From the NCBI RefSeq assembly GCF_964194025.1, contig NC_134477.1:31806001-31870000 (forward strand): 64,000 nucleotides of DNA. Direction: 5' to 3'. The DNA is from Convolutriloba macropyga. Its lineage: Eukaryota. This document shows, one piece after another, positions 9,036 to 40,572 of this stretch. Position 1 is the stretch's first letter, and every line of letters starts with the position of its first letter. A model generated the notes under the pieces. The model searched no databases. It saw only the letters and a list, made by a program, of their open reading frames with translations, and was not told where the DNA came from. Position numbers and translations under genes: made by a program.

Positions 9036-12000
9036 TGAAATGATAATTGAGTAGCTTCTGCTGTGTCGTAANNNNNNNNNNNNNNNNNNNNNNNNNNNNN
9101 NNNNNNNNNNNNNNNNNNNNNNNNNNNNNNNNNNNNNNNNNNNNNNNNNNNNNNNNNNNNNNNNNNNNNNNNNNNNNNNNNNNNNNNNNNNNNNNNNNNN
9201 NNNNNNNNNNNNNNNNNNNNGTTTCAGATGCTGAATAAAAACTTGCAATAAACGGTGTTTCATTTGAGCAACACGACATTATTATTCAACATCTGTCATG
9301 AAGTTCCCACCTCCTGGTCTTCCGATGGAGCCAACCCAAGAGCAATGGTCTTGGTGAAAGCGATGCTTTTTTTATGGTTGAACAATCAATGGAATTATGG
9401 AAGAATCTCATAAATTGACATTTCTCAGATCATGCGCAGGGTCAATACTCTTTACAATTATCGTGGGAGCAACTACTTTCACCGAATCAATCGGTATTCT
9501 GGATGCTCAGTTCAAGAAGCCTTCTAAAATTATATACGCCAGACACCAAGTCCTTTCGTGCAAGCAGCAAGATGATGCGTGCATAACAGCGTTTTTCCAT
9601 TGACTAGGGATTCTTGAGCGCTGTGAATGCAAAATACCTCACTGTTTATCAACACAAGGACATACTTCTTCACGATGATCTAGTGGATGGTCTTAAATCT
9701 GACACAATACGTCTTTGACTTTTTGGAATTGGCGGACTCGAAAACTTCACTTGAGATATGCATTTCACTCACCAATGCAATAAAAGTATCCGCCAATTTC
9801 TTCCGCTCACTCAATGCTAGCTCAGACACTCCGCCATCTACATCTAATGCATGCATCGGAAATATCGCTGCTGTCAATAAAAGAAGTGCTCAACCATGAA
9901 AGGTTCCGAATTGTAATTGTGGATTTTGTGGTCTGAAGACACATCCACGGACTAAATGCGCAGCTCAATGAAGTACGTTTCTGAAATTTGGCAAAAAAGG
10001 GCATTGGGCAGCAGCGTGTATGTCAAATTTTGCAACTGTCGCATCGGATAATGGCGAACAAATAACTTCTGTACTACGCAGTGTGAAGACAACGAACGAA
10101 GTGACAAGTTCTCCCAATAGAATCTAGGAAAAAAAGTTTGTTGGCGAGGACTGCTCTTTTCATGTTAGAGCGCTTATTGATCCTGGCTCCACTCATTTAT
10201 TTTTAGCGGCTGACGTGTGTGAGCAGTTGCAATTAAAAATCCAGCAAATGAAATCAAAATCTCGTCGCGTCGAAAAGAATTTCCCATTCATGGATTTTGT
10301 AGTGCTTTAGTGAGCATGAATAACTTTTATTATACTCTTTCTTTATCTCCGGATAGTCATTTAATTCGTAGCGCAATCATTGTACTGGGTGTACTCTCGC
10401 AACATGAAACAGTCTTACTTGAAATTTTTGGAAAAAGGACTTAGTTGGACGTTTCTAATTTGACGCAAATCTAGACCCATCGTAACGAAATCCAGAAACT
10501 CAAACAAAGAAGATTTTATGAGTATATGCAGAATGAAAATTCGGATCTGCTAAGGAAAGGAAGAGTTCATTGCTCACCATCTCCATGGCGAGCTCAGGCG
10601 TTTGTTGTAAAAGGTCAAAAATGACGAATGGTAATTGACTACTCCATGACAGTCAGTTTATCTACCAGTCTTGATTCGTATCTGTTTCCCAATATGGAAG
10701 AGCTGCTGAGCAACGCTTCTAAATATCATTTTTCTCAAATTGTAACTTAAAGAGCGCTCATCATCAGGTACCAGTGAAAGAAGAAGATAAAAAGCTCACA
10801 TGTTTTGCAGTTTGGGGAAAGATTTATCGACTGAATTATCTTCCCTTTGGAGTAACTAACGAGTTACCTGCGTATCAATGAAATATAGACAATTTTGTTG
10901 ACTGAAGCAAGCTACAAAGGACCTACTCTTACCTTGATGATGAAATAATAGGCGGAAGATCAAAAGAAGAGCATGACAAGGACTTTAAAATTTTTCTTTT
11001 TGCTGCCGATAAATAAGGAATCATCTTAAATATGGACAAAGTTCTGTTCTGTCAAAAAGAACTTTCTATGCTAGGCTTCATCGTCTCCGAAAATTCTCAG
11101 CGGTCGGAACCAGAGAGACTGCGTGCTCCGAAGGAGTATCCGGTTCCAGGCAATGCGAAAACATTACGATGTTTAATTTGATTTTTTGCGTATAAAGCAA
11201 AATGGGTACCGCAATACTCAAGCAGAATTCAGCAGCTCTTGGAAGCTCCAAAACAATGACATCGTATCAAAGACATCAAGTCGCCGGTCATTGATGCTTT
11301 TAACCTTGGCCCGCGCAGATGCTGGTAATTTGCTTCTGGAAACTGAGCCTCTGGTAAGCCATGGAATCATGATTATCCCGAAATAGCAGCCAATAGCGTG
11401 TTTTTTTGCAAAAATTATTGCAGTGTGAGCGGAATCATTCAGGTGCGGAAACATTCAGAAAGGGTTCCACTTTGTTGAGGACATTTCAGGTTACAGTGAA
11501 GATTGATCAAAAGAGCATCGCATATATATTTTTTGCAGCAAAAATGAAAAAAGAACAATAAGCTCCTCCGCTGGCGAATCGGTTTTGCTGAATATCGCTC
11601 TAGTAAAGAATACAGATCTGAATGCAAAAATAAAGGTGTTGATGCGCAGATTAAATCTTCGTTTTCTCTCTGCACGATAATTTAGCACATCCTGGAGTGA
11701 TTAGATTTTGGCACTACATCAAAGCTAAGGACTTAACGCTCACTTTTGTGGACGTTTAGCAAGTTATCGCCACATGCGACACCAATCGGCGATTAAAACC
11801 CATATTTTACAAGCCTAGCCGGCATTGTCAGAAAAGCTCTTTCAGAAAGTTTTCCGTTTACTGAGGACATTTCCGGGTACTGGGATGGCCGATCAAAAAA
11901 GAATCGCTTTTATATTCTCGCAGCAAAAATTAAAAAAGAACTAGAATTCCCTCCGATGGCGAATCGAAGTTGCTAATTATCGCTTAAGTATTGAGTGCTT

Positions 12001-18989: not shown

Positions 18990-21900
18990 TTTTTTTTAAA
19001 CAAGTAAATTGAAAATATAACCCGGGGGTTAAATATCACAAGTTTAAAATTATATATACAAAATTAGTACAATGTTAAAAATCAAAATTAGTGGTTCCGT
19101 TTTTTAAAGGTAAAAATAACTTTTGAAGCCACCAACGTTCCTTTCCAACGGTACAAGTTTGAATTGTTGGAGCAGATGCCTTTTTAACATGCGTTTAAAC
19201 TTTGAGCGTGATCTGATAGTCCGGATTTCACGCGGAAGTTTATTCCATTTTTGGATGCTTCTTTTTTGTAATGATCGACTGCTCGACCTTAGGAGAATTA
19301 GCTGTTCAGATCTGTTTTTTTCTTACTAAGACATTACCACTCAGAGAAAAACTCTCAGTGTCTCAGTGCCATCTGATTTCAATAATGAAATATCATTCCT
19401 AAGTTTTGAAACGCTCATATGGCTTATTAAAAGTTCTGCAGGCAAAGTGTTAGATTTTACTGAGAGATCTGTAGATCTCTCAAACTTTTTTCTCATATAG
19501 CAAACTTTAATTCCCCAATTGATTTGTCGATTAATTCGCTGCATTGCAGAGAATTTCAAGTTTTGAAAAAATAGAGCACTGAACGTTAAATGAGAGAGGA
19601 CTAGGGATTTGAATAGCGTCAATCGTGCTTTCAGAGGCAACCGATAACGTATAAGATATATGGATCTAATCAATGTGGCCATATTTGACAGGACTTTGTT
19701 GAGTTGTAAATGAAACTTTAATTTAGAATCAATCATTATACCCAAGTATCTGCAGTGACTTTGTGGCTTAATTTCTTGTCCCCGTTAAACTATTGGATTA
19801 AAATTTTCATTTTCTTTCGAGACGCAAAGATTTTCAGTTTTACCGGTATTCATGGTTAATTGGTTTTCCTTTAGATAATTATCTGTTTTCTCCAGTATTT
19901 CAGAAACAGATTTTTCCAGTTCGCTGCCATTGTTTCTGCTAAAATGGAAACATGTGTCATCAGCAAATTGAATTATGTCGAAGTTTCCTTGTACCTTTTC
20001 TCGAAAATCATTAAAGTAGAGAAGAAAAACTAAAACTGTTACCTGTGGAACACCATGATTTGTTTCCAACCGTTTTGAGTAAACATCATTTATCTTAATA
20101 CACTGCTGTCTGTTTTTAAGAAATGAAGCAAATAAATCACTGCACATTCTGAAAAACCGTAAGCTTCAATCTTTTTGAGAAAAATTTCGTGCGATATTGA
20201 ATTAAATGCTTTAGCTAGATAAAAAAAAACAACAAATGAAATTTTTAGAGTTATCATAGTTTTCTTGTAATGCTTCGATTAAGTGTAAAACAGCATCTGT
20301 AGATGACTTATGTTTTTGAAATCCAAACTGTGTACCATTCAAGATTTTTTCTTTTTGCATAAATTCGTTAACCTGATTGAGAAGTATACGCTCAAAGAGT
20401 TTTGCAAACATAGGAGTAAATGAGATAGGCCTATAATTCTCACAAATTTTCACATCCCGTTTTTTGAAGACCGGACTAATGAAAGCAATTTTAAAGTTTT
20501 CCGGGAAAATATTCTGAATAATGCATGTGTTAAAAACAAACTGCAAATGGGTTCCAATTGCATAATTTACTGCCTTGATTGCCCAAGAATTTAAAACGCC
20601 TGGACCCGGAGACTTATTGTTGCCGAGTGAATCAATGGCATCATAGAGTTCCTTTTGTGTAACTGTTCTGAAGCAAAACTTTTCCCTAACTTCTATGCGA
20701 GAAACATTTGGAGCGCTCACATATTGTCCATTGTTTAAGCCTAATTTTTGAAAACTTTTATTGAGACAATTTGCAATATCAAGTTCATTTTCTAATTCTC
20801 TTCCACCATCGACTAGTTTGTCTTTCCCTTTGAGACACTCCCTTTCTTTGCCAGTTCTTTTTTTGATGAAACTCCATTGTTCTTTACTTGTTCGTAGATC
20901 TTTGAAAAATTGTTTGCAAAACTCGTTTTGGGCTGTTTTTAAACGTCTATTAACCCAATTTCTCTGATATTTGAAAATGGTATGCACTTGCTCCGATGGG
21001 TTCTTTTTCTAGTATTAAAAAGTCTATGTTTTTTCGTGATTTCTTCTCTCAGCTCTTTTGTTAGCCAAAGTTTTTCAGCAATTTTTCTTTTTGTTGAAAA
21101 CTTTTTATAAGTGGGGCGTTTAACTCTAGAGTAGCACTGCAAACGTTTATGAAAACATTGTACATGCTATTTCCATCTTCACATTGATATAAGTTACTCC
21201 AGTCCTGATTTGAAAGATCGAGACTAAATTATTTGCATCGAACTTTCTTTTGTTTCTACTGATAAAGCTTTGCTTCCTGTTTTTAGGTTAAACAAAAAAA
21301 TTGGTAGTATACAAAACAATCAAGTGATCCATTTCAACTGATGGGGAAAAAATCTGAACATCTTGAATTTGGTTTTTGCTGGAAAGCCCATGATCAATTA
21401 GTGTTACGTCTTGGCTGGTGGCTCGTGTTGGTTTTTCTGTGTTTGACAAGGTAAATCCTGAATTACTGGCAAACTCATCCAATAAAGTGGATTCTCTTTT
21501 GTTTAAATAATTGAGATTATAATCGCCAAAAAGCCAAACTTCGTCAGTGATTGAGTACGCCGAGGAAGTCTCTGATGTTAATTCGTCAATGAAAAAGTTT
21601 CCTAAAATTTTATTTGGACAATAAGAAGCATTAATTAGGATTTTGTTCACCAATAGTCCAGATATTTCTACCCATAAGGACTCAAAAAAGCTTTCATTGA
21701 ATACATTTAGATCATTTCGCTGTTTTGAAGATATGTCTCTAGGAACCCAGATGGCAACACCCCCACCCTTATTTACTCCTGTCTTTGATGACCTTGATTT
21801 TAAATAAAGTTTGTGCTTCGGACTCAAAAAACTCTCCGGATGAACATCTGTTTCGTTCAACCAAGTTTCAGTTAGGATCACTATTGTGTTTTGAGTCAAA

Positions 21901-23676: not shown

Positions 23677-25542
23677 ATGGATGTTGTATCAGCTGCTTCC
23701 ATTGGAACATCTCTCGTTGCAGGTGTTTCAGTTTTCATGTTTTTCCGTCGATTCAATATTTGGTATCAATTGTTTCACAAAACCGAAAAGCGCAGTGTTA
23801 AAAATGGTGGTTCTTTGGTCGCTCAGGTTTTGAAAGCTCATGATGTTGACACAATTTTCACTTTGCCCGGTGGTCATATATCACCAATATCTGTGGCATG
23901 CGAGAAGCTTGGAATCAAAGTAGTCGACACCCGGCATGAGGTCACAGCTGCTTTTGCTGCCGATGCTTACGCTAGAATAGGTCGAGGCATCGGAGTGGTT
24001 GCTGTTACAGCTGGACCTGGCCTAACAAATGTTGTTACTGCTTTGAAGAATGCCCAGATGGCGGAATCTCCTGTTTTACTGCTTGGTGGAGCGGCTGCAA
24101 CCATCCTTAAAGGCCGAGGTGCGTTACAAGACATTGATCAGATGTCATTGTTTAAGCCGGTTTGCAAATACTGTGTATCTATCAGAAAAGTAAGAGATAT
24201 CATTCCAACGTTGAAACATGCTATAAAAATTGCTCAATCAGGAGTTCCAGCCCCAGTTTTTGTTGAACTTCCTATCGACACACTGTATTCATATGAGGCA
24301 ATTAGCAAAGAGATTGGTGTCAAGCCAAATGCCAGAGGCTTAATTCAGAAGATTGTTAACTTATACTTGAATACTTACCTAAATAATTTGTTCTGTGGTG
24401 CGTTTGAAATTCGTGACTGCGAGCCACTGAAAATTGACATTCCAAAAGCCACCGATGCAGATGTTCAAGCTTCCGCCAAATTACTCTCGCGAGCTAAGAA
24501 ACCCGTATTTCTTATCGGCAGCCAGGCAATTATACCGCCGTGCCCTTTGCAAAACACTATCGTTGCCCTGGAATCCTTTGGAGTTCCCTGCTTTCTAAGT
24601 GGAATGGCTCGTGGATTGCTGGGCAGAAATAATCCGATCCATATTAGACAGAACAGGTCACAGGTACTGAAAGAAGCCGACTTAATAGTTCTTGCCGGTA
24701 CTGTGTGTGACTTCCGGTTGAGCTATGGAAGGTCTATTGGGAAGCAAGCTAAAGTAATATCTATCAACAGAGGGAAAGACTTAATGAAACTAAATAGTGA
24801 CATGTTCTGGAAACCTGAGATTGGAATAGTTGGGGATTCTGCAGATTTCATTGGACGGTTACACGCTGCGCTACCAGGTTACAAAGCTGACCATGCATGG
24901 GCGACAGATTTAAAACTCAGGGAAAAAGAAAAGGAAGATAAACATGTTGAGAAAGGTAAACTGGATGTCGACAGGTATCTCAATCCTCTACACGTGCTTC
25001 ACAAGGTTGAAGAGACTCTGAGCGATAACGCTATTTTGGTAGCCGATGGCGGGGACTTCGTTGCTACTGCTTCCTACATTCTGAGACCCCGAGGTCCGCT
25101 ACAGTGGCTAGATCCTGGACCCTTCGGGACCCTGGGAGTTGGAGCTGGTTTTGCGATCGGCGCAAAAGCTGCTAACCCCGATTCCGAAATCTGGATTATA
25201 TACGGAGACGGCTCATTGGGTTACTCGATAATCGAATATGATACTTACAGACGATTCAAAATTCCTGTTCTCTCAATTGTGGGTAACGATGCTTGCTGGA
25301 CGCAGATTGCCCGAGAGCAATTTCCAATGTTGGGAAGCAACGTTGGATGCATGTTGGAATTCTCTTCATATGAGAAAGTGGCAGAAGGATTTGGCGCGAA
25401 GGGCGTTCTTCTTCAAAGTAAAGAAGAAGATATCGGGGGAGCGATAGAACAGTGTAAGGCCAGTTTGCAGGACGGGAAATCTGCGCTCATCAATTGTCTC
25501 ATAGGCAAAACCGACTTCAGAGAAGGATCTATCTCGGTTTAG
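23677..25542 (+). CDS. ILVBL: ILVBL / 2-hydroxyacyl-CoA lyase 2 (acetolactate synthase-like, TPP-dependent), 621 aa, uninterrupted ORF
   Basis: N-terminal hydrophobic anchor, [28 protein letters not shown] (catalytic Glu), [25 protein letters not shown] motif GDG..GND, and C-terminal [11 protein letters not shown] typical of animal ILVBL. An acceptor-like ttttcag ends at 23661, just upstream of the ATG. Confidence 0.96.
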
Positions 25543-25918: not shown

Positions 25919-28900
25919 GAGAGAGAGAGAGAGAGTTAATTCCTCTGAGTATAAACAAACATCAAAATATAACACATGACAAAATTTCCTACTTTTAGAG
26001 TTCAAGATCAGAAACGTCAAGTTATCATTGCATTATACATAAAACCATTGCACACTCAGAGAGGACAGTTTACGGATCCGACTGGATCACTGAGCACTGA
26101 CCTTAATTCTTTTTTTTTTACAATTGGATATGACTATTCAAAAAGAAAAAAAATTTCTCTTAAAAGACAATAGATGAAATTCTCAATTTATTTGATGGAA
26201 TTTTCAATTTTTGACAAAATTTTTTACCCCTTTAGAAACGCCGGCGACAGCAAATTGAATAATTTTGTGTTGTCTTCTTAATAGCTTATAAAAAAAAGTC
26301 CGCGAAAGGTGTACACAAAGTCCCAATTAGGAGATTGTTTTTGTTAATTCATAATTCGATAAAATGTAATTGTCTATAATCTTGTGCACCAGACTGACAA
26401 ACGAAAAACTAGAAAGTTCATTATAGTTTCGATGGTAACACATTGTTTTCAATAAAAAGATTAAGTAATTTGGCACCTCTGTATCTCAATGAATTCCTTT
26501 CGAACTTTCGTTTACACTTTGGTACTTTCAAAAACCATTGCAACGATCTTCTTGTGGAATTGTTTGATCGGGATTCGAAAGAAAATAACTCATTAAGATA
26601 TGTATCTGTGTGCATTTTATTACTGATTTTATTACAAATTTAAGAAGTTCATAAATATGCAATTCGTGAGCAGTTAAGACCTTGTATTTCTCAAAAAACT
26701 GTTACATTTTCTGTGTATTTCTGGAACAAAATGAGCCTGAGAGTTTTTTTGCAATAGAACTAAAGGTTGAAGGGAAGTAAAGCTTACACATCCATATATC
26801 AGCACACCATATTGAATGATTGGTTTGATATTTGATGAATAAAATTGGAATAAAACACGTTTTGGTACATAATGCCTTAATTTTGACACTATTCCGCACT
26901 GCATTGCTAACTTTTTCTTCCCATCCTCAATGTGCTCTGTGAATTTCAATTTTTTATCCAAACGAACTCTGAGATACTTGCAGCTTTCTGACTCAGGTAT
27001 ATTAACAGAATTTAATTTAAATACGGAAAAGCTATTGACATTAGAGGCGCTTTCCTATTTTAATATTCATTTGACAACTTTTTTCAGGATTAAGAGACAG
27101 CTTGCTGGCGTTGAGCCATTTCTCTACATTGACCAAATCCTTTTGCATTGATTCAAAATCTTTATTGACTGCTGTTAAGTTGGTATCATCTGCGAAGAGA
27201 AAAGTTCTGAAGACTTGGCACACGTCTGGAAGGTCATTTATGTATATTAAAAGTAGCGGGCCAAGAATCGAGCCTTGTGGAACACCACAGTTTAACTTCA
27301 ACCAGCTGGAGTTGCAATTATTGACTGAAACACATTGCTGTCTTTCCGATAAATAATCACTAATCCATCTTAGGCAAACTCTTCTTGTACCATATAGTTC
27401 AAGCTTTTGTAATAGGATTTGGTGGTCTATTGTGTCAAAAGACTTTATTAAGTCAATAAAAAATGTGGCTACCTGACAATTGCGTTTGCAATGGCATCAA
27501 TAGTGCTATGTTTTTTTCGAAAACCAAATTGATTAGGATGGAACAAACTGAAAGTTTCAAAGTAAGTATAAATTCGATTATACATAATGCGTTCAAAAAC
27601 TTTACTCCACACAATGGGAAGCGAAATTGGTCGGCCGTTATTTATCTCGTCCTTCGCCGCTGCCTTGTGCAGAGGTACAATTATAGCTTGTTTTAGAATA
27701 CTTGGAAATTTACCGTCTTTAAAAGATTTATTAACGAGATGAACAAGATGCTTGCAAATTAAGAAACCTGTTTTCTTAATCAAAATCGTACTAATATCAT
27801 CAACTCCCGAAGATGATTTTTCTTTGAGATCCTCAATTATTTGCAAGATTTCGTTGCAATTTGTTTCATAAAGCCACATACTCTGCAAAATATTAACCTC
27901 AGGATTAACAAAAATCTCATTTGGGATGTCTGCTTTTAGTTTCTGTTCTATACCTACAAAAAAAGTGTTGAGCTCGTTTGCAACATCTAGATTATCATCA
28001 ATTCTTCTACCATCTTTTATTAGATAAGGAACTTTAGAATTTTTAATAGTAATTCCCTTAAGCTCATTTAAAATTTATAAACTTGTTTTGAGTTTCCGAT
28101 GCATTTTGTGAACTTTTGCTCATAGTAAGAATTCTTTTTGGCTTTGATTGTTTTCTCCACTTTAGTTCGTAGTGCTTTAAATTTCTCTAATTTTTGGTTG
28201 TTCTGACGGTCTATTTTCCATGACTTGTGTGATTGGTTTCTTTTGCAGATCAAATTTTTCATATTTTTATCAAACCAATTAGGTTTTTTAATTGTATTCC
28301 TGCTTGACCTCCGATATGGTGCAAACATTGCTAATACTTCTTTTAAAGTATTTTGAAATCTGTCAAAAGCACAGTTTATACTTTCCGTTTTCTGGTATCT
28401 TATTGTAGCTAGTGATTCAGAAAGGTTATCAAGAAAAAGAAGACATTCTACTCAACGATTTGAGAAAACTGGTGTCACGAAAACCAATTTCTGGTGAACA
28501 ACTTTTGCTAAAAACCAATTTCTGGTGAACAACTTTTGCTAATCGTTTTCTGAATCCTTAAATTTTGTTACGAAAAAGTGATCTAAGCAAGTCGAGGTAT
28601 TTCGGCTAATGCGAGTTGGCTAACGACAACATGGTTGAAAACCATCTGATTGGATAGTCGATAGATATGATGACGTCATCAGATTTTTTATCTAGAACGT
28701 TGATGTTGAAGTCCCCACAAACAGTTATTCTGTCATAATTTTCATTGATGTTTTCCAATGTTTCATCGAGCTCAAAAATGAAATTCTGCCTGTTAATTCT
28801 GGGGGGATTATAAACCACTAACACGGCAATCTTTAACTCTCCGAATTTCAAGTGAACCAAAAGACTTTCATTCAATTTGCAATTCAGCTCCTCAATCAAG

Positions 28901-33890: not shown

Positions 33891-34232
33891 GATCAAATAA
33901 CAAAATTTTTCTTTCGATTTTATAGATTTAGTTCTGTGAAACAAATGCGTTTTCGGTTCATTGTAGATAGATTGCTCGTTGACATTTTTTTTCGCGGCTA
34001 TTTTGCTGATAGTTCGTCTACGTTCTACATCGTACTGTACTTCGTCAATGCGCTCGCTGTAGTTCTGTATGTTACGGTGTTGATCAGTTCTGACAAAGGA
34101 ATTGAAATAAAATCGGGGATTTTTAAATTTTACAAGTACTCATCAAAAGGAGATGGCTCGAATTAAAAATTTTTACTGTACACAACTGGTCGACTTTTTT
34201 GTATTATAAAGTACTGGGTAGTTTCAGGCTAA

Positions 34233-34589
34233 ATGGCAACATGTAATATCAAACGGATAAAACCATATCGAGATGACAATCATGGCAACAAACATGACCA
34301 CGAAAATGACGATAATACCTACTGCTATCAAGCTAAAGGAGGCTCGTGGGTCTACATACCAGAACTGATAAATCCATTCTCAGCTTTGAATGTGGGCAAA
34401 AATGCGAGTTTGGGCGAATGCAAGAGAGCCTTCCGAAGGCTAGTGGCGACTCCGAATCGCCAGAAACGGATGTTGGTTGCTTATGCCTGGCATATGCTAA
34501 CAAACGAGGTTTTGTATGCGAAGGGTGAAAAGAGTCTCTGTGATGTTTTCGACTACGCAATCAGCGGAGATACTTTGAATTTGGCACAG
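34233..34589 (+). CDS. Exon 1 of J-like/ankyrin/ART gene
   Basis: ATG at 34233. NPFSALNVGKNASLGECKRAFRRLV matches J-domain helices I-II. Ends cag|gtatac in phase 0, in the middle of an ankyrin-like repeat (DVFDYAISGDTLNLAQ). Confidence 0.8.
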
Positions 34590-35439
34590 GTATACCCTGC
34601 TTTATTTATCATTTTTTGCCAAGATATTTATTTTTGGTTTCAAAAATTTTTTTATATCGTGTGAAAGATGAACTCAAAAGCATTGTGAATATTTGCTGTC
34701 ATTAAGTATAGCTGGTTAGTCCTAATTTAGAAGACAACACTTCTAATTGTAATATACCAGTATAACTGTTTATAAAAGATCTGTAAAACTAAAAAAGTTC
34801 ATCAATTTAAATAAGGAGTCAAAGAAATCAGACGATAACATCTGGTTCCTTTACTATCATGAATGTGATATATGAAACCTCGGAAATCCGATTGAATTTT
34901 CAAAAGATGGATGCTAGCGAGTAACTTTTTGAGATTAAATTAGGCTATTTTTTTAAGAATGTATTTGAAGTTACTTGCGAAAACCTTTTCCTTGATTAAA
35001 AAGTCGACAGTCGCCTATTAGCATTAGTGAAGACTCAAACTCCATCAAACCTGTTTTGTTCTATTTGCCTGGCATTGAGTGATGGATTAGTGATGAGTGA
35101 TCACGTACTGCAATGCAATTGAATGAGTACAAGGGATTGCAACAAAGCTATGCGTAATGTAGGAGAGAATTGCATTTTTAGATCTTGAATTGTCTTGATT
35201 GATCGACTTCTGAATGATGAAATTCATATGCTTATCATCATAAAGTTTCTCATCCAAGTGAATTCAAAGAACCTGTAATTCCCTGTGAAAGCTGAAGTTG
35301 ATTGCTTGGCTTACAGTTTCTTATCGTTTAGTTTTACCTGTACTCGAAATCATGAGCAACTTTGATTTTGTTACATCAACTTGAATTTCTTTCTCAGGTA
35401 AATTTTTTTACAGTTTTTCATCCTTTTTGTGTTGCTTGT

Positions 35440-36319
35440 AAAGATTCTTTACTGCCCAAGAATTGTATGTTTACGAACTTCTTAAATTCGAATAAAAGCA
35501 GTAAAGAAAATGCATGTAGATACATATCTCAAGACTTATTTTCTTTTGAATCGGGATCAAACAATTCAACAAGATCCTTGAAATAGTTGTTGAAAACTCC
35601 TAAGTGTAAATGAGAATTCGAACGGAATTCACTGAGATACAGAGATGCCAAGTTATGACGTCCTGAACAAAATTTCGAATAAATCAAATACAAACTAATC
35701 GTGTTAACTTTTGTTTACATTCTTTGGTAAATTTAAGCAATTTCCTCTTGCGTAGCTCCAGATATTACAGTCAAGCATATACATTTTTTATCAGCTGAAA
35801 GCGCTAATTAATAAAGATTATTTCTCTCTTCTTTACCTCCTATTGTTCTTGATGAATTAAATTATTTAAGAAATTGTTTTTAGTTTTCAGACAAAAATAG
35901 TGGAATGCGTACTCAAACCGTTGTCGACTCGGCATCTGAAGAAAAGTTAGCTGCTTCGCCATTCTTCTCGCCTTTTACAAATTCTAAGTACTTGCTAAAC
36001 ATTAATGCATGCTAAGAAGACAGAAAAGCAATTTTCTTGATTAGAATAATAAAAAACAAGAAAACATATTGGTTGAAATTGTGAATTTTATACCGGATCA
36101 ATTTTTGTTACCACCCCCTGGAATATCCGAGGTTTCCTAATGGGGTGAAAAATTTTGTCCAAAATTGAAAATTCCGGTAAATAAGTTCAGAGTTTTGAGA
36201 AATTGAAGGGCTTTGTTTAGTGATCCATTGGATCCGTACTCTCCTCTCTGACTTTATCTAATTTTCCCGTATAATGAATAAGTAACTATAATGAATAAGT
36301 AACTTGAAGTTTTCTGATC
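35440..36319 (+). mobile_element. Intronic 3' remnant of the same CR1 family as 25919-30245
   Basis: 35450-35655 matches the reverse complement of 26470-26675. 36135-36319 matches the reverse complement of about 26005-26240. Confidence 0.85.
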
Positions 36320-37157
36320 NNNNNNNNNNNNNNNNNNNNNNNNNNNNNNNNNNNNNNNNNNNNNNNNNNNNNNNNNNNNNNNNNNNNNNNNNNNNNNNNN
36401 NNNNNNNNNNNNNNNNNNNNNNNNNNNNNNNNNNNNNNNNNNNNNNNNNNNNNNNNNNNNNNNNNNNNNNNNNNNNNNNNNNNNNNNNNNNNNNNNNNNN
36501 NNNNNNNNNNNNNNNNNNNNNNNNNNNNNNNNNNNNNNNNNNNNNNNNNNNNNNNNNNNNNNNNNNNNNNNNNNNNNNNNNNNNNNNNNNNNNNNNNNNN
36601 NNNNNNNNNNNNTCAAAACATCCATGAGATTTACATGAAATAATGAATCAAACGGTTTTGAAACCTGCAGGACACAGCATGCTGTGTCGTTACTATAGTT
36701 TCTGTTAGCAAAGGAAGTGCTTCTGTTGCGGAGCGTGTTCGTGTTTTTGTCCAAAATTTTATCTGCTTAGTGAGAGCAATGGGTTCGCGAGTTTAAAAAA
36801 ATCCTTGAACTTGTTAATGCGTTGACAAGTATAAGCGCACATGAGATCTTTGACAGTTCTTTATTCTAATATATTTCTCTTTTCGGCCGACTGTTTTTTG
36901 TGGGGCTCAAATTTTGCTTTTTAAAAGAGGTTTTAATTATTTAAATCTAAAAAAAGGAACAAAATTCAATCCATTATTGCTGTGCAAAAACAAATGAGTA
37001 GATTGCGCAAAACAAAATGGCAGTGCAAAAGTAATAATAATAAAAATTGCAATGTCATTACTGAAAGCCAATTTTTAGGGACTTGGCGATTTTTAGGGAC
37101 TTGATCTCGACGAGTAGTTTTTCCATAGTACATGAGAAATAGAATTGTTCTTTGCAG

Positions 37158-37932
37158 GAGCTGGCAAAGCATCCGAAAGCTGTGCACTGTACGGATACGT
37201 CTGATCATTCTCTTTTGTACGTTGCTGCTAGAAGCGGTTTTTACGACACATGTGAGTTCCTTCTAAGCAAAGGAGCATCGCCTCTTACAGCTTGTGGAGC
37301 TGCAAAGTCAACTCCATTACATGCCGCCGCTTATTACGGACATGAGTTGTTGTGCACCCTTCTAATCTCGAAAGGAGCTGATGTTGACGCCAAAAATGCT
37401 TTTGGAAATACTCCTATTGATGAAGCCTTAAATGACGAAGTCAGGCATAAACTACAGGGAGGTGGTCGAAACGATAAGATTTCGGTCTTATTCAAGACAG
37501 CTCAAGGTTTTGGTGATTATTCTATAGAAGATGTAACCCACAGAGGATATGTAATTGCACGCAAAATCAGGAAAAATCGCGAAGTACCTAAAAATTGGCT
37601 TCCTGCATGGCACGGAACAAAAATGAAATTTGTTAAGTCAATTCTGAAAAATGGACTGAAACCATCGGGATCTGAAGTTGAAGGAAAAATGATACAACCG
37701 CCGAAAGGTCACTATCAACTTGGTTCCACTCATTTTGGAATTAGGAATTGGGCAAATGCGGTGTTTATTTCTCCCAGCTTGATCTACTCAGGACATCCAA
37801 CGTACTCGGAGCGGGTTTTGATTCGTGGATCTCAGTGGTGTGTTATTGTTTGTGTGTTGTGTCGACCTGGTTCATTCGGTTCCTATCCGAGTACGATTGT
37901 TCGAGATGATCCAATTGACGGTGAACCTCTAG
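37158..37932 (+). CDS. Exon 2 of J-like/ankyrin/ART gene
   Basis: Acceptor tttgcag|gag in phase 0. Ankyrin repeats SLLYVAARSG, STPLHAAAYYGH, GADVDAKNAFGNTP; ART motifs AWHGT..SILKNGL, VFISPSLIYSG, CRPGSF. Donor g|gtttgt in phase 1. Confidence 0.9.
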
Positions 37933-39151
37933 GTTTGTTTTTAATAATCAATAATTCTCATGAAATTGTTTGGTCTGAAACGAATATAAAAAAGTTTGCG
38001 CTGCATTTATGAGTTTAAATGGCAGCGAAGTTTTTATTGTTTAAATTGCAAACAACTTGTTTTAATGGCTATCAAAAATTTTAATTGGCGTAGGGCCGGC
38101 CTTACTGAGGACTAGCTGGGAAAAGTTACTAATTGCTGCAACATTGTTTCCGAGCTTACCAGTTGTCACAATAATTAATAGTTTAATCAGGCACACGTTG
38201 GGGAAAATGAGTTCTAACCCTCAATGGAGCTTTTGATATTATTAATTTGCGGATAACTTTTGATTTGTCTGTCAGTTTTGACCTCTTGAATTACGCATCG
38301 GACAACGGTGGGTAGTAAAGGACTTAGGAGCTCATGAACCGATTGATACCAACTAATGGCTGTAAACAAATGTTGACGTTTTTCTGCCGAGATATGACTC
38401 TCTCAGAAGTTATGGGCCCGTGATGTAAAAATTGTCTAGTAGCAAGATGATGAGTTGATTATCAAAATATGTAGTCTACCCTACAGCAGAAAAGTTTACA
38501 AGTTTACAATCTTTACATTAAACAACGAAAGTGCCAGCTTTGTATTGTTGCTTTCTTTTCTCGTCTCCATCACAATGATGCCAAAAAGATCGATCGGGGC
38601 GATATTTAGGCAGTATATTGGGTTTGTTTGTAGAAGTAGTAATAAAATTTGATCCTTATTGTTGGTTTTTTATCATCGACTACAAGAATTTTGAGATAAA
38701 GAAGTTTGTCAGCTGTGTCCTGAAAAGCTTATATGCTCTGTACAACTGTTTGTGTTTTTGTCGATTATCATAGCTAAGTTTTGTGATTGTAAAAAATCTT
38801 GAACTGACAAACGTCATAGAATGAATCGGACGCCCAAAAAAGACAGGCTTTCAATCCAATCCACACTAAGTGCTAAGAAGGTGGATTAGTAATATGCGTT
38901 CGCAAAATGTTCCAACCCGTCATTTGCCAAGCAACTTGGGAAAACTTTTATCTAAGATGAATATCAACAGATTTGTACATAAGGGGTTTTCCACCTATTG
39001 GCATTGCGGGTAGACAAATGACTATATACTTCTTTTAAATATTTTTCAAATATTTTTTTGAAACGTTTAAAACGTCCAAATAAAACATTTTTCTCTCGAT
39101 GTCGGTTGAAAATGGTTATCGCCTGTTTCGTTCATCTTCTTTGTCAAAAAT

Positions 39152-39264
39152 CCCTGAGAAACAAATATTCTTGGGACACGTTTCTTCAAACCAAGTTTAT
39201 CACTTTAGGAATTAGAAGTGACTAACCTGATTTGAGATGTGTCTCAAGAATGTTTTTCTCAGGG
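39152..39264. repeat. Intronic palindrome / MITE-like hairpin
   Basis: ccctgagaaacaaatattcttgggacac...tcactt pairs with aagtga...gtgtctcaagaatgtttttctcaggg around a ~10-nt loop. Confidence 0.85.
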
Positions 39265-39976
39265 GGTATATACTCAACTTCGTAGAGGTTCTAAAGAATG
39301 GAGTTCAAAATTGAAAGAAAGCTTTTTTAGTTGCTGCAAAAAGTTGCTGCTTTGTGTAATTTTTAGAGTAAAAATTAATTAGCTTCCTTCTGGAATGCTT
39401 CCTGAGCACCAGCATCATACGTTCCAACTGCTATTGAAATTATGCAATAAAAAAAACAAAAATTGTATTGCAGCAGTGCCGAAACAGCTCAAACTCGATT
39501 GACGGATTTTCCAAAATGCAATTAGTTGTCTTCAATTGTTTGTCTTCTCTCGGAACTGGCATTATCGTTATATAATTTTTTGGCACATGAAAACTTGGCA
39601 GAAAATAACATGAGAAATATGAGAAAGTCCACCTTGACCTTTCTACCTTGACCTATTGTGCTTCTCGAATGTCAACCATTTGCACCTGAGTTCTTAAGTG
39701 TTATGAAATTATTTAGAAAATCAAACTACAATAAAAAAGACAATTAATGATCTACATCATTAATTACAGCAATTAAAAGTACTTGAAAATTTGAATCTTT
39801 CCTCTGAATTTGGATGTTATACATTAAATAATTTAAGCATTTGAAAATAATTTAATGTTAGAACAGGTAATTTAAGCATTTGAAACATAGGTATTTAAGC
39901 ATTATTTGTAAACAATTTATGCATTTGAAAATAATCTAATGTTACAACAGGTTAAAAAGTCTCCTCGATACTTTAG

Positions 39977-40161
39977 ATGCAGAGTGGCGCATTGACGTTG
40001 AAGGCGACGACCTAATTTGGCGAATGGGTAATCAATCTACCAGGGAAAGTTTGGTTGTCACCGGTGTGACTTTTGTTGATCTTGACTTCTTCGAACGAAT
40101 TGGAAACTCAAACTACCCCAATTACCGACAGGCTTCAAAACTGATCCACACAAACTACTAA
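39977..40161 (+). CDS. Exon 3 (terminal) of J-like/ankyrin/ART gene
   Basis: Acceptor ctttag|at completes a GAT codon in phase 1. Reads DAEWRIDVEGDDLIWRMGNQSTRESLVVTGVTFVDLDFFERIGNSNYPNYRQASKLIHTNY* and supplies the EW glutamate strand of the ART fold. Not in the ORF track. Confidence 0.82.
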
Positions 40162-40572
40162 GAAAATGACAGGAATTGAGAAAGAGAAATGCATCGATCG
40201 ATGATTTAACTGAATACATCTACATCTAGTTTGACTCGGTGTCTTTTATCTATTAATTGCAATTTTAGTTGTTTTGAATCCTTCTGTACATATGCGCAAA
40301 GCTACTGGTGCTTTCTTCAAATGGCCAGATTGCTGTTTAATTCTATCTCTGGTGCTCCGATCAATTATATTTTTTATACTGTAAAGATTTGTGATATTTT
40401 AGATTGACAAATTTAGAGTTTAATAGGTTGAACCTATTGTTAGTATTCATTAGATTGATCCTATCTGCAACTTTCATAATTAACTTTCACTGTATTGGTC
40501 TCAATAATATTATCCTGATTCCTTTGAGAAATCTATGCTGTGAGTTTGATCAAATTGCTTTTAGATGCATGA

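Follow-up and report, generated by a model that had tools for sequence, protein, structure and literature searches.

The closest described system to the gene reported here is NEURL4, to our knowledge the least understood PARP-related transferase, with one activity paper and no structure. The ADP-ribosyltransferase (ART) domain of NEURL4 was reportedly predicted by de Souza and Aravind in 2012. NEURL4 has been reported to make poly(ADP-ribose) in vitro (Cardamone et al. 2022, PMC8932523), with an activity reported as DNA-dependent (PMC8932523), and it is described as 'PARP-like', not as a PARP (PMC10450202). Its motif triad is printed as HGS / LLS / ELE (H-L-E) in Table 1 of PMC7955679, and the 'NEURL4-like ART' is treated as a small non-Pfam family that comprises NEURL4 and a handful of relatives retrieved by BLAST or JackHMMER (PMC7955679, PMC7949102, PMC10450202). 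Here we analysed a 64,000-nt stretch of Convolutriloba macropyga DNA (contig NC_134477.1, positions 31,806,001 to 31,870,000; referred to as the window), a nuclear locus in an animal genome of 1.18 Gb. The window contains a three-exon gene whose 438-amino-acid (aa) product combines an N-terminal beta-hairpin, a degenerate J-like domain, ankyrin repeats and a C-terminal ART domain of the NEURL4 clade. With a probability of about 0.75, we read it as a transcribed gene for an NAD+-dependent transferase of this layout.

The J-like–ankyrin–ART gene is a genuine, spliced, transcribed animal gene. The three exons had been proposed in an earlier note made from the DNA letters, and the letters, the RNA contigs and the colinearity of homologues all bear the model out. 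Specifically, the spliced coding sequence of 1317 nt encodes 438 aa and a TAA stop with zero internal stops, all boundaries are GT/AG, and the phases match. The product has no evident signal peptide. The remark in the same note that the open reading frame (ORF) track shows disconnected pieces and misses exon 3 also holds, since a bacterial-style ORF listing gives just a 143-aa and a 286-aa piece. For annotation, the lesson is that prokaryote-style ORF calling shows just a 286-aa ankyrin fragment of such a gene.

Four public runs contain this DNA. Three of them have intron coverage, as DNA would, while run X3 behaves as RNA, because its depth is confined to 34219-34590, 37155-37929 and 39974-40190 and is zero in both introns. 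RNA across 34589/37158 and 37932/39977 had been named as a check on the gene model, and contigs of run X3 join both junctions. At junction 2, one 1208-nt contig skips 2044 nt with GT..AG ends; the skip is reported as 37929->39974, and a cut shifted by +3 gives 37932/39977. At junction 1, a contig ending at 34590 runs on into AGCTGGCAAAGCATCC, the start of exon 2, and reciprocally a contig starting at 37155 has GAATTTGGCA, the end of exon 1, ahead of 37155. The RNA contigs of X3 also carry 14 additional 5' letters, ATAAACTTATTAAA, ahead of 34219. No + strand copy of ATAAACTTATTAAA occurs upstream within the window, and these letters may derive from a distant 5' upstream exon or a trans-spliced leader.

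An assembly gap sits between exons 1 and 2. The run of N lies 1.7 kb past the donor and 0.5 kb short of the acceptor of intron 1, and because it is wholly intronic it cannot alter the reading frame. Full-length homologues are colinear without insertion over both junctions (alignment A1), as exemplified by a Symsagittifera paralogue over exon 1/2 and by P0002, P0003 and many others over exon 2/3. Because RNA contigs and homologue colinearity cross junction 1, no coding sequence is hidden in the gap, an optional exon aside. It is thus barely credible that chance ORFs bridged over the gap have produced an artefactual gene model or a decaying pseudogene. The position of the gap, and the fact that ORF callers return a 286-aa exon-2 fragment (P0001), would fit such a reading, but spliced transcript contigs cover both junctions, the ORF has no stop or frameshift, and the protein has 68% identity to one from Symsagittifera and retains each family-invariant residue. 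Within the stretch 36810-37209, a short high-copy repeat occupies about 36960-37030 of intron 1; there the depth of DNA-run contigs rises from ~40 to thousands with numerous divergent overhangs.

Modelling indicates that the C-terminal domain has an ART fold of the PARP/diphtheria-toxin type, H-Y-E class, and is PARP-related. When single exons were searched with Pfam, the ankyrin repeats alone passed, and PARP, Tpt1 and DnaJ were sub-threshold; profiles and structures were therefore used next. The Pfam PARP match (PF00644) has 20.5 bits against a gathering score of 26.7 and spans ~35 residues (aa 144-178 of exon 2), and the PARP matches of relatives are sub-threshold too in 19 of 20. Searches of PDB sequences with the ART profile gave marginal Tpt1 and PARP3 matches (E 0.03-0.9). 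Because PDB Foldseek with a full-length model was swamped by ankyrin proteins and was uninformative for the ART or J parts, the C-terminal domain was refolded alone. The AlphaFold model of the ART domain from the closest complete homologue (P0002:113-311) has a predicted local distance difference test score (pLDDT) of 85.7 and a predicted template modelling score (pTM) of 0.83. The top 50 matches of this model in PDB Foldseek are all PARP catalytic domains (50/50). In VIA-align against 48,161 chains, the model matches PARP16 (Z 8.2), PARP10 (8.1), PARP15 (8.0) and PARP1 (7.4), with PARP13 (7.2), TASOR (6.4), Tpt1 (6.1), DarT (5.2), and diphtheria toxin and exotoxin A (about 6) in lower rows. 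The ESM-Atlas feature neighbours of the domain are also PARP clusters. The earlier note had predicted an H-x-E ART fold with His and Glu retained at 37611 and 39982; the domain model, Foldseek, VIA-align and conservation are all in agreement with this, and the two positions open the codons of His271 and Glu380. In common with the PARP/ARTD proteins (PF00644; the mono-ARTs PARP16, PARP10, PARP14/15 and PARP4), the protein has the predicted ART fold, the His of HGT, the Ser/Tyr region and a Glu at the catalytic position. It differs from them in lacking a PARP regulatory or WWE domain, in having Phe on beta-2 and in failing Pfam PARP, and its Foldseek E values to them are higher than those to NEURL4 by some four orders of magnitude.

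In the structural comparisons, the ART domain lies closer to the C-termini of NEURL4 than to any other ART family. The top three Foldseek matches of the ART model among the Swiss-Prot entries of AFDB are the human, Xenopus and mouse NEURL4 C-termini (residues about 1375-1560), with E 1.8e-7 to 8e-7 and 19-21% identity; the next match is PARP16 at 4e-3. The full-length model of P0003 returns the same NEURL4 matches in Swiss-Prot. Comparison by hhalign of the family ART profile (A2) with an alignment (A5) of the C-termini of four NEURL4 proteins, one of them a named hagfish NEURL4, gives 94.3%, E 1e-7 and 27% identity over 94 columns. The motif parallel with NEURL4 drawn in the earlier note (cores HGS, LLS and ELE) agrees with PMC7955679 Table 1 and with the retrieved NEURL4 C-termini. 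Specifically, the triad of the 438-aa protein is HGT / FIS / AEW (H-F-E), and the motifs common to both are [WY]-H-G-[TS] ... [LF]-x-S-P-[ST] ... [VK]-[RK]-P-G-S-[FY] ... E-W. In both proteins the ART domain is C-terminal, and neither ART domain has a Pfam model.

The gene thus carries a NEURL4-type ART domain, yet it is not a NEURL4 orthologue, because no Pfam match to NHR repeats (PF07177) is present in any of its three exons and the NHR-repeat gene of the genome is elsewhere (C10:45.96 Mb). NEURL4 has about 1500 aa with NHR/neuralized repeats, whereas the present protein has 438 aa with a degenerate J-like domain and ankyrin repeats. The genome's own NEURL4 homologue (C10:45964815-45968435, - strand) shares the contig of the window, at a distance of about 14 Mb, and reads as one uninterrupted frame of 1207 aa that holds three neuralized (NHR) repeats. 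Among named proteins, hagfish NEURL4 and a beetle NHR protein match it best. It has Y-H-C-P in place of H-G-[ST] and retains S-P-T, K-P-D-S-Y and E-H-E-W. In hmmsearch, profile A2 matches its C-terminus with 12.2 bits at aa 1053-1160, and hhalign of A2 against it gives 82%, E 1e-5. The kinship between this protein and the ART domain is visible to profile methods only.

The residues expected in an NAD site are conserved across the family. Among 208 family proteins, a set in which some 90% clusters contribute several near-identical members, the His is found in 181/181, the beta-2 Phe in 204/204, Ser/Thr in 201/204, the Tyr in 194/205, the Glu in 179/188, and an Arg two residues after the Glu in 176/187. 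Every such residue is present in the 438-aa protein. Several relatives join the domain to other modules. One consists of ankyrin repeats, this ART domain and an ADP-ribosylglycohydrolase (ARH; PF03747, 3e-58), and another consists of ankyrin repeats, this ART domain and an R-S-E ART (PF01129). Others have IBR, ankyrin repeats and the ART domain, the ART domain and TLDc, or a trypsin-like peptidase and the ART domain, and ESM-Atlas structure clusters confirm the ankyrin, TLDc and trypsin architectures. The fusions to ARH and to a second ART are an internal argument for a domain that writes ADP-ribose. Because H, S, Y and E are near-invariant and such ARH and ART fusions exist, we infer an active NAD+-dependent transferase, which would bind NAD+ and transfer ADP-ribose to a substrate. 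The term 'mono-ART' in the earlier note is firmer than the evidence allows, as NEURL4 itself is reported to make poly(ADP-ribose) in vitro (PMC8932523), and the product may be mono- or poly-ADP-ribose.

It is unlikely that the domain is instead a pseudo-enzyme, whose ART fold serves as a scaffold or as a reader of NAD or ADP-ribose, as proposed for TASOR, PARP13 and LRRC9. The inactive ART folds of TASOR (Z 6.4) and PARP13 (Z 7.2) are among the structural neighbours, the beta-2 Tyr is replaced by Phe, and NEURL4 itself is termed 'PARP-like', not PARP (PMC10450202). However, pseudo-ARTs typically lose His and/or Glu (PMC7955679 Table 1), whereas in the 208 family proteins these two residues, like the Ser and Tyr of the NAD site, hardly vary, and a relative with a fused ADP-ribosylglycohydrolase implies the writing of a genuine mark.

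The ankyrin repeats claimed in the earlier note are borne out by Pfam, with Ank_2 at 2.3e-20 (73.4 bits) and Ank at 9.6e-14 (51.2 bits), both above cut-off, and the structural model of P0003 has three to four repeats. The repeats could recruit the substrate of ADP-ribosylation. Tankyrase likewise has ankyrin repeats N-terminal to an H-Y-E-class ART domain, and its repeats presumably recruit substrates. Tankyrase nevertheless belongs to another ART clade and has five ARC clusters, against three to four repeats here, and a SAM domain, which the present protein lacks. The resemblance is architectural only and implies no orthology; the matches to ARC are generic ankyrin matches.

An active ART that modifies small molecules or the ends of nucleic acids, as do Tpt1/KptA, DarT and some PARPs, is an improbable alternative to a transferase acting on protein. 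In its favour, the HGT region gives weak, repeated sequence matches to Tpt1/KptA, Tpt1 (Z 6.1) and DarT (Z 5.2) are in the fold list, and the activity of NEURL4 is reported to be DNA-dependent (PMC8932523). On the other hand, PARP catalytic domains and NEURL4 score clearly above Tpt1 or DarT, ankyrin repeats are typical protein-protein modules, and no nucleic-acid-binding domain was found by Pfam in the exons.

HPD is the tripeptide that is essential for Hsp70 ATPase stimulation by J proteins. In the 438-aa protein it is changed to PNR (aa 74-76, inside PNRQKR), and no family member in alignments A1 or A3 has HPD. Profile comparisons nevertheless identify the N-terminal domain as a J-domain relative, J-like rather than a functional J domain. 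Specifically, an hhalign comparison of the N-terminal profile of the family (A3) with 11 canonical J domains of this genome (A4) gives 96.7%, E 4e-10, and a search of all PDB sequences with A3 returns 53 matches, of which 53/53 are J domains (best 3.5e-6). Pfam DnaJ (PF00226) matches the gene's protein with 13.6 bits, so that this protein alone stays below the cut-off of 27.8, and 14 of 21 family members are matched, also below cut-off. As a weak lead, the ESM-Atlas feature neighbours of the region are DnaJ clusters. The HPD-less J-like domain of the earlier note is therefore upheld by hhalign, by the all-J PDB matches and by PNR in place of HPD. In common with DnaJ/Hsp40, the family has the helix I-II signature N-P-[FY]-x-x-L-x-[IV] ... 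A-S-x-x-E-[IC]-K-x-A-[FY] and the helix II/III hairpin. In contrast to DnaJ/Hsp40, it has x-x-R-Q instead of HPD, with a conserved R-Q-x-R, and its loop/helix III region lacks ~10 residues relative to canonical J domains.

Because HPD is lost, canonical stimulation of the Hsp70 ATPase is excluded, given established knowledge of J proteins. For the same reason, the J-like domain would be a docking or structural module built on the conserved R-Q-x-R. A link between ADP-ribosylation and the Hsp70 system is suggested by the degenerate J domain and could be tested. An ACBD6-like reading of the N-terminus, prompted by the top Swiss-Prot Foldseek match of the full-length model, was rejected, as that match is ankyrin-driven and has a root-mean-square deviation of 20 Å. 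The genome is very rich in J-domain ORFs. Genome-wide, 910 first-look candidates yielded 151 Pfam DnaJ matches, nearly all above cut-off. Many of them lie in open frames of 283 or 308 aa that are almost the same in sequence, pointing to a J-domain gene family that is expanded or repeat-borne.

Several points weigh against an active NEURL4-type transferase encoded by this gene. The sequence-only PARP and Tpt1 matches are sub-threshold and limited to the HGT (WHGT) region, and pairwise BLASTP of the ART domain with the NEURL4 homologue of the genome falls short of significance (E 0.38). The structures were modelled for the homologues P0002 (68% identity) and P0003 (52%), not for the 438-aa protein itself, and a VIA Z of ~8 is 'middling' by the scale of the tool, its weight coming mainly from every row being an ART. 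The classical PARP beta-2 Tyr is Phe in this family, the case for enzyme activity is built on residue conservation and fusions, and the RNA support consists of assembled contigs from one run and one study, not of raw reads.

With a threshold of E <= 1e-3, the ART profile matches at least 727 cluster representatives (clusters at 50% identity); with E <= 1e-10 it matches 347. Members with a name are known from the acoel Symsagittifera, the rotifers Rotaria and Adineta, the cnidarians Oculina and Paramuricea, and a transcriptome of the diatom Odontella. The suggestion of a lineage-specific effector in the earlier note does not survive this count of representatives from several phyla, and a role in stress or defence is speculation. 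The same note did not recognise the architecture from vertebrate, fly or nematode ART repertoires, and no paper combining ART, J domain and ankyrin repeats was found in the searchable literature. Members are named 'uncharacterized', 'unnamed protein product' or 'ankyrin repeat protein' in the databases. A known catalytic clade is thus found in a new, widespread architecture, and this large, unnamed eukaryotic family appears to be uncharacterised. In animals and protists, the catalytic domain of NEURL4 occurs in compact proteins of 400-450 aa as well, next to another targeting module. Small, soluble members of this kind would lend themselves far better to expression, crystallisation and assays than NEURL4 with its 1500 aa.

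The closest complete homologue is P0002 of Symsagittifera, which is 68% identical. In a quick maximum-likelihood tree of 58 rows, the gene's protein forms a clade with Symsagittifera P0002 and with P0022, a row that has no taxon name (support 100). This trio falls inside an eight-row clade (support 100) with Odontella and metagenomic sequences, apart from the cnidarian and rotifer clades. The tree is unrooted, most rows have no taxon name, and MMETSP data can be contaminated; patchy inheritance of the family is only a hint. The A2 profile search of the genome found just the two exons of this gene and no second copy, as a lower bound.

A wider scenario, a long shot at present, is that the family is a widespread uncharacterised NEURL4-type branch, in which the HPD-less J-like domain would dock on Hsp70-class chaperones or their clients without activating them, the ART domain would modify the chaperone system, and a fused or separate ARH would erase the mark. 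The acoel copies might, in addition, derive from an alga-like donor through horizontal transfer, since they group with the diatom transcriptome sequence and not with the cnidarian or rotifer copies.

The family member P0025, from Symsagittifera roscoffensis, is called 'alpha-latrocrustotoxin-Lt1a-like' at NCBI, a misleading name that goes back to its ankyrin repeats alone. It has the same J-like, ankyrin and ART layout, with a C-terminus truncated in that model. On a 558-kb eukaryotic metagenome contig (L016), a small gene at 9840-10037 (-) matches the Deltex C-terminal (DTC) domain, which is linked to ADP-ribose. This gene is 2.5 kb from family member P0005 (L016:6001-7323), maybe by coincidence.

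Features of the J-like–ankyrin–ART gene, in window coordinates
Feature	Position	Strand	Remarks
5' UTR (untranslated region)	back to at least 34219	+	RNA contigs of run X3
Coding exon 1	34233..34589	+	aa 1-119, ATG to GT donor at 34590; exon inspection and RNA contigs
N-terminal beta-hairpin, predicted	34314..34361	+	aa 28-43; conserved, Y-x-x-x-G-G motif; alignment A1, model of P0003
Degenerate J-like domain	34368..34532	+	aa 46-100; helices I-III recognisable; profile comparisons
Intron 1	34590..37157	+	GT..AG; holds assembly gap 36320-36612 and high-copy repeat near 36960-37030
Coding exon 2	37158..37932	+	aa 120-377 plus first base of codon 378
Ankyrin block	37158..37499	+	aa about 105-233; first repeat starts in end of exon 1 at 34545; Pfam and model
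Predicted ART domain, first part	37524..37932	+	aa 242-377; WHGT, VFISPS, CRPGSF strand
His271 (in WHGT)	37611-37613	+	
Phe322 (in VFISPS)	37764-37766	+	
Tyr329	37785-37787	+	
Intron 2	37933..39976	+	GT..AG; spliced out in RNA contig of run X3
Coding exon 3	39977..40161	+	aa 378-438 and TAA stop; predicted second part of ART domain, then C-terminal helix
Glu380 (in D-A-E-W-R)	39982-39984	+	exon 3
3' UTR	beyond 40190	+	listed with exon 3

The window also contains, 9 kb upstream of the J-like–ankyrin–ART gene, an intronless 621-aa ORF at 23677-25542 (+). This ORF encodes an entire thiamine-pyrophosphate enzyme (TPP_enzyme_N, M and C; acetolactate-synthase/HACL-like). It is flanked by reverse-transcriptase (RVT_1) fragments at 20211-20987 (-) and 27469-27888 (-), which are decayed retroelements.

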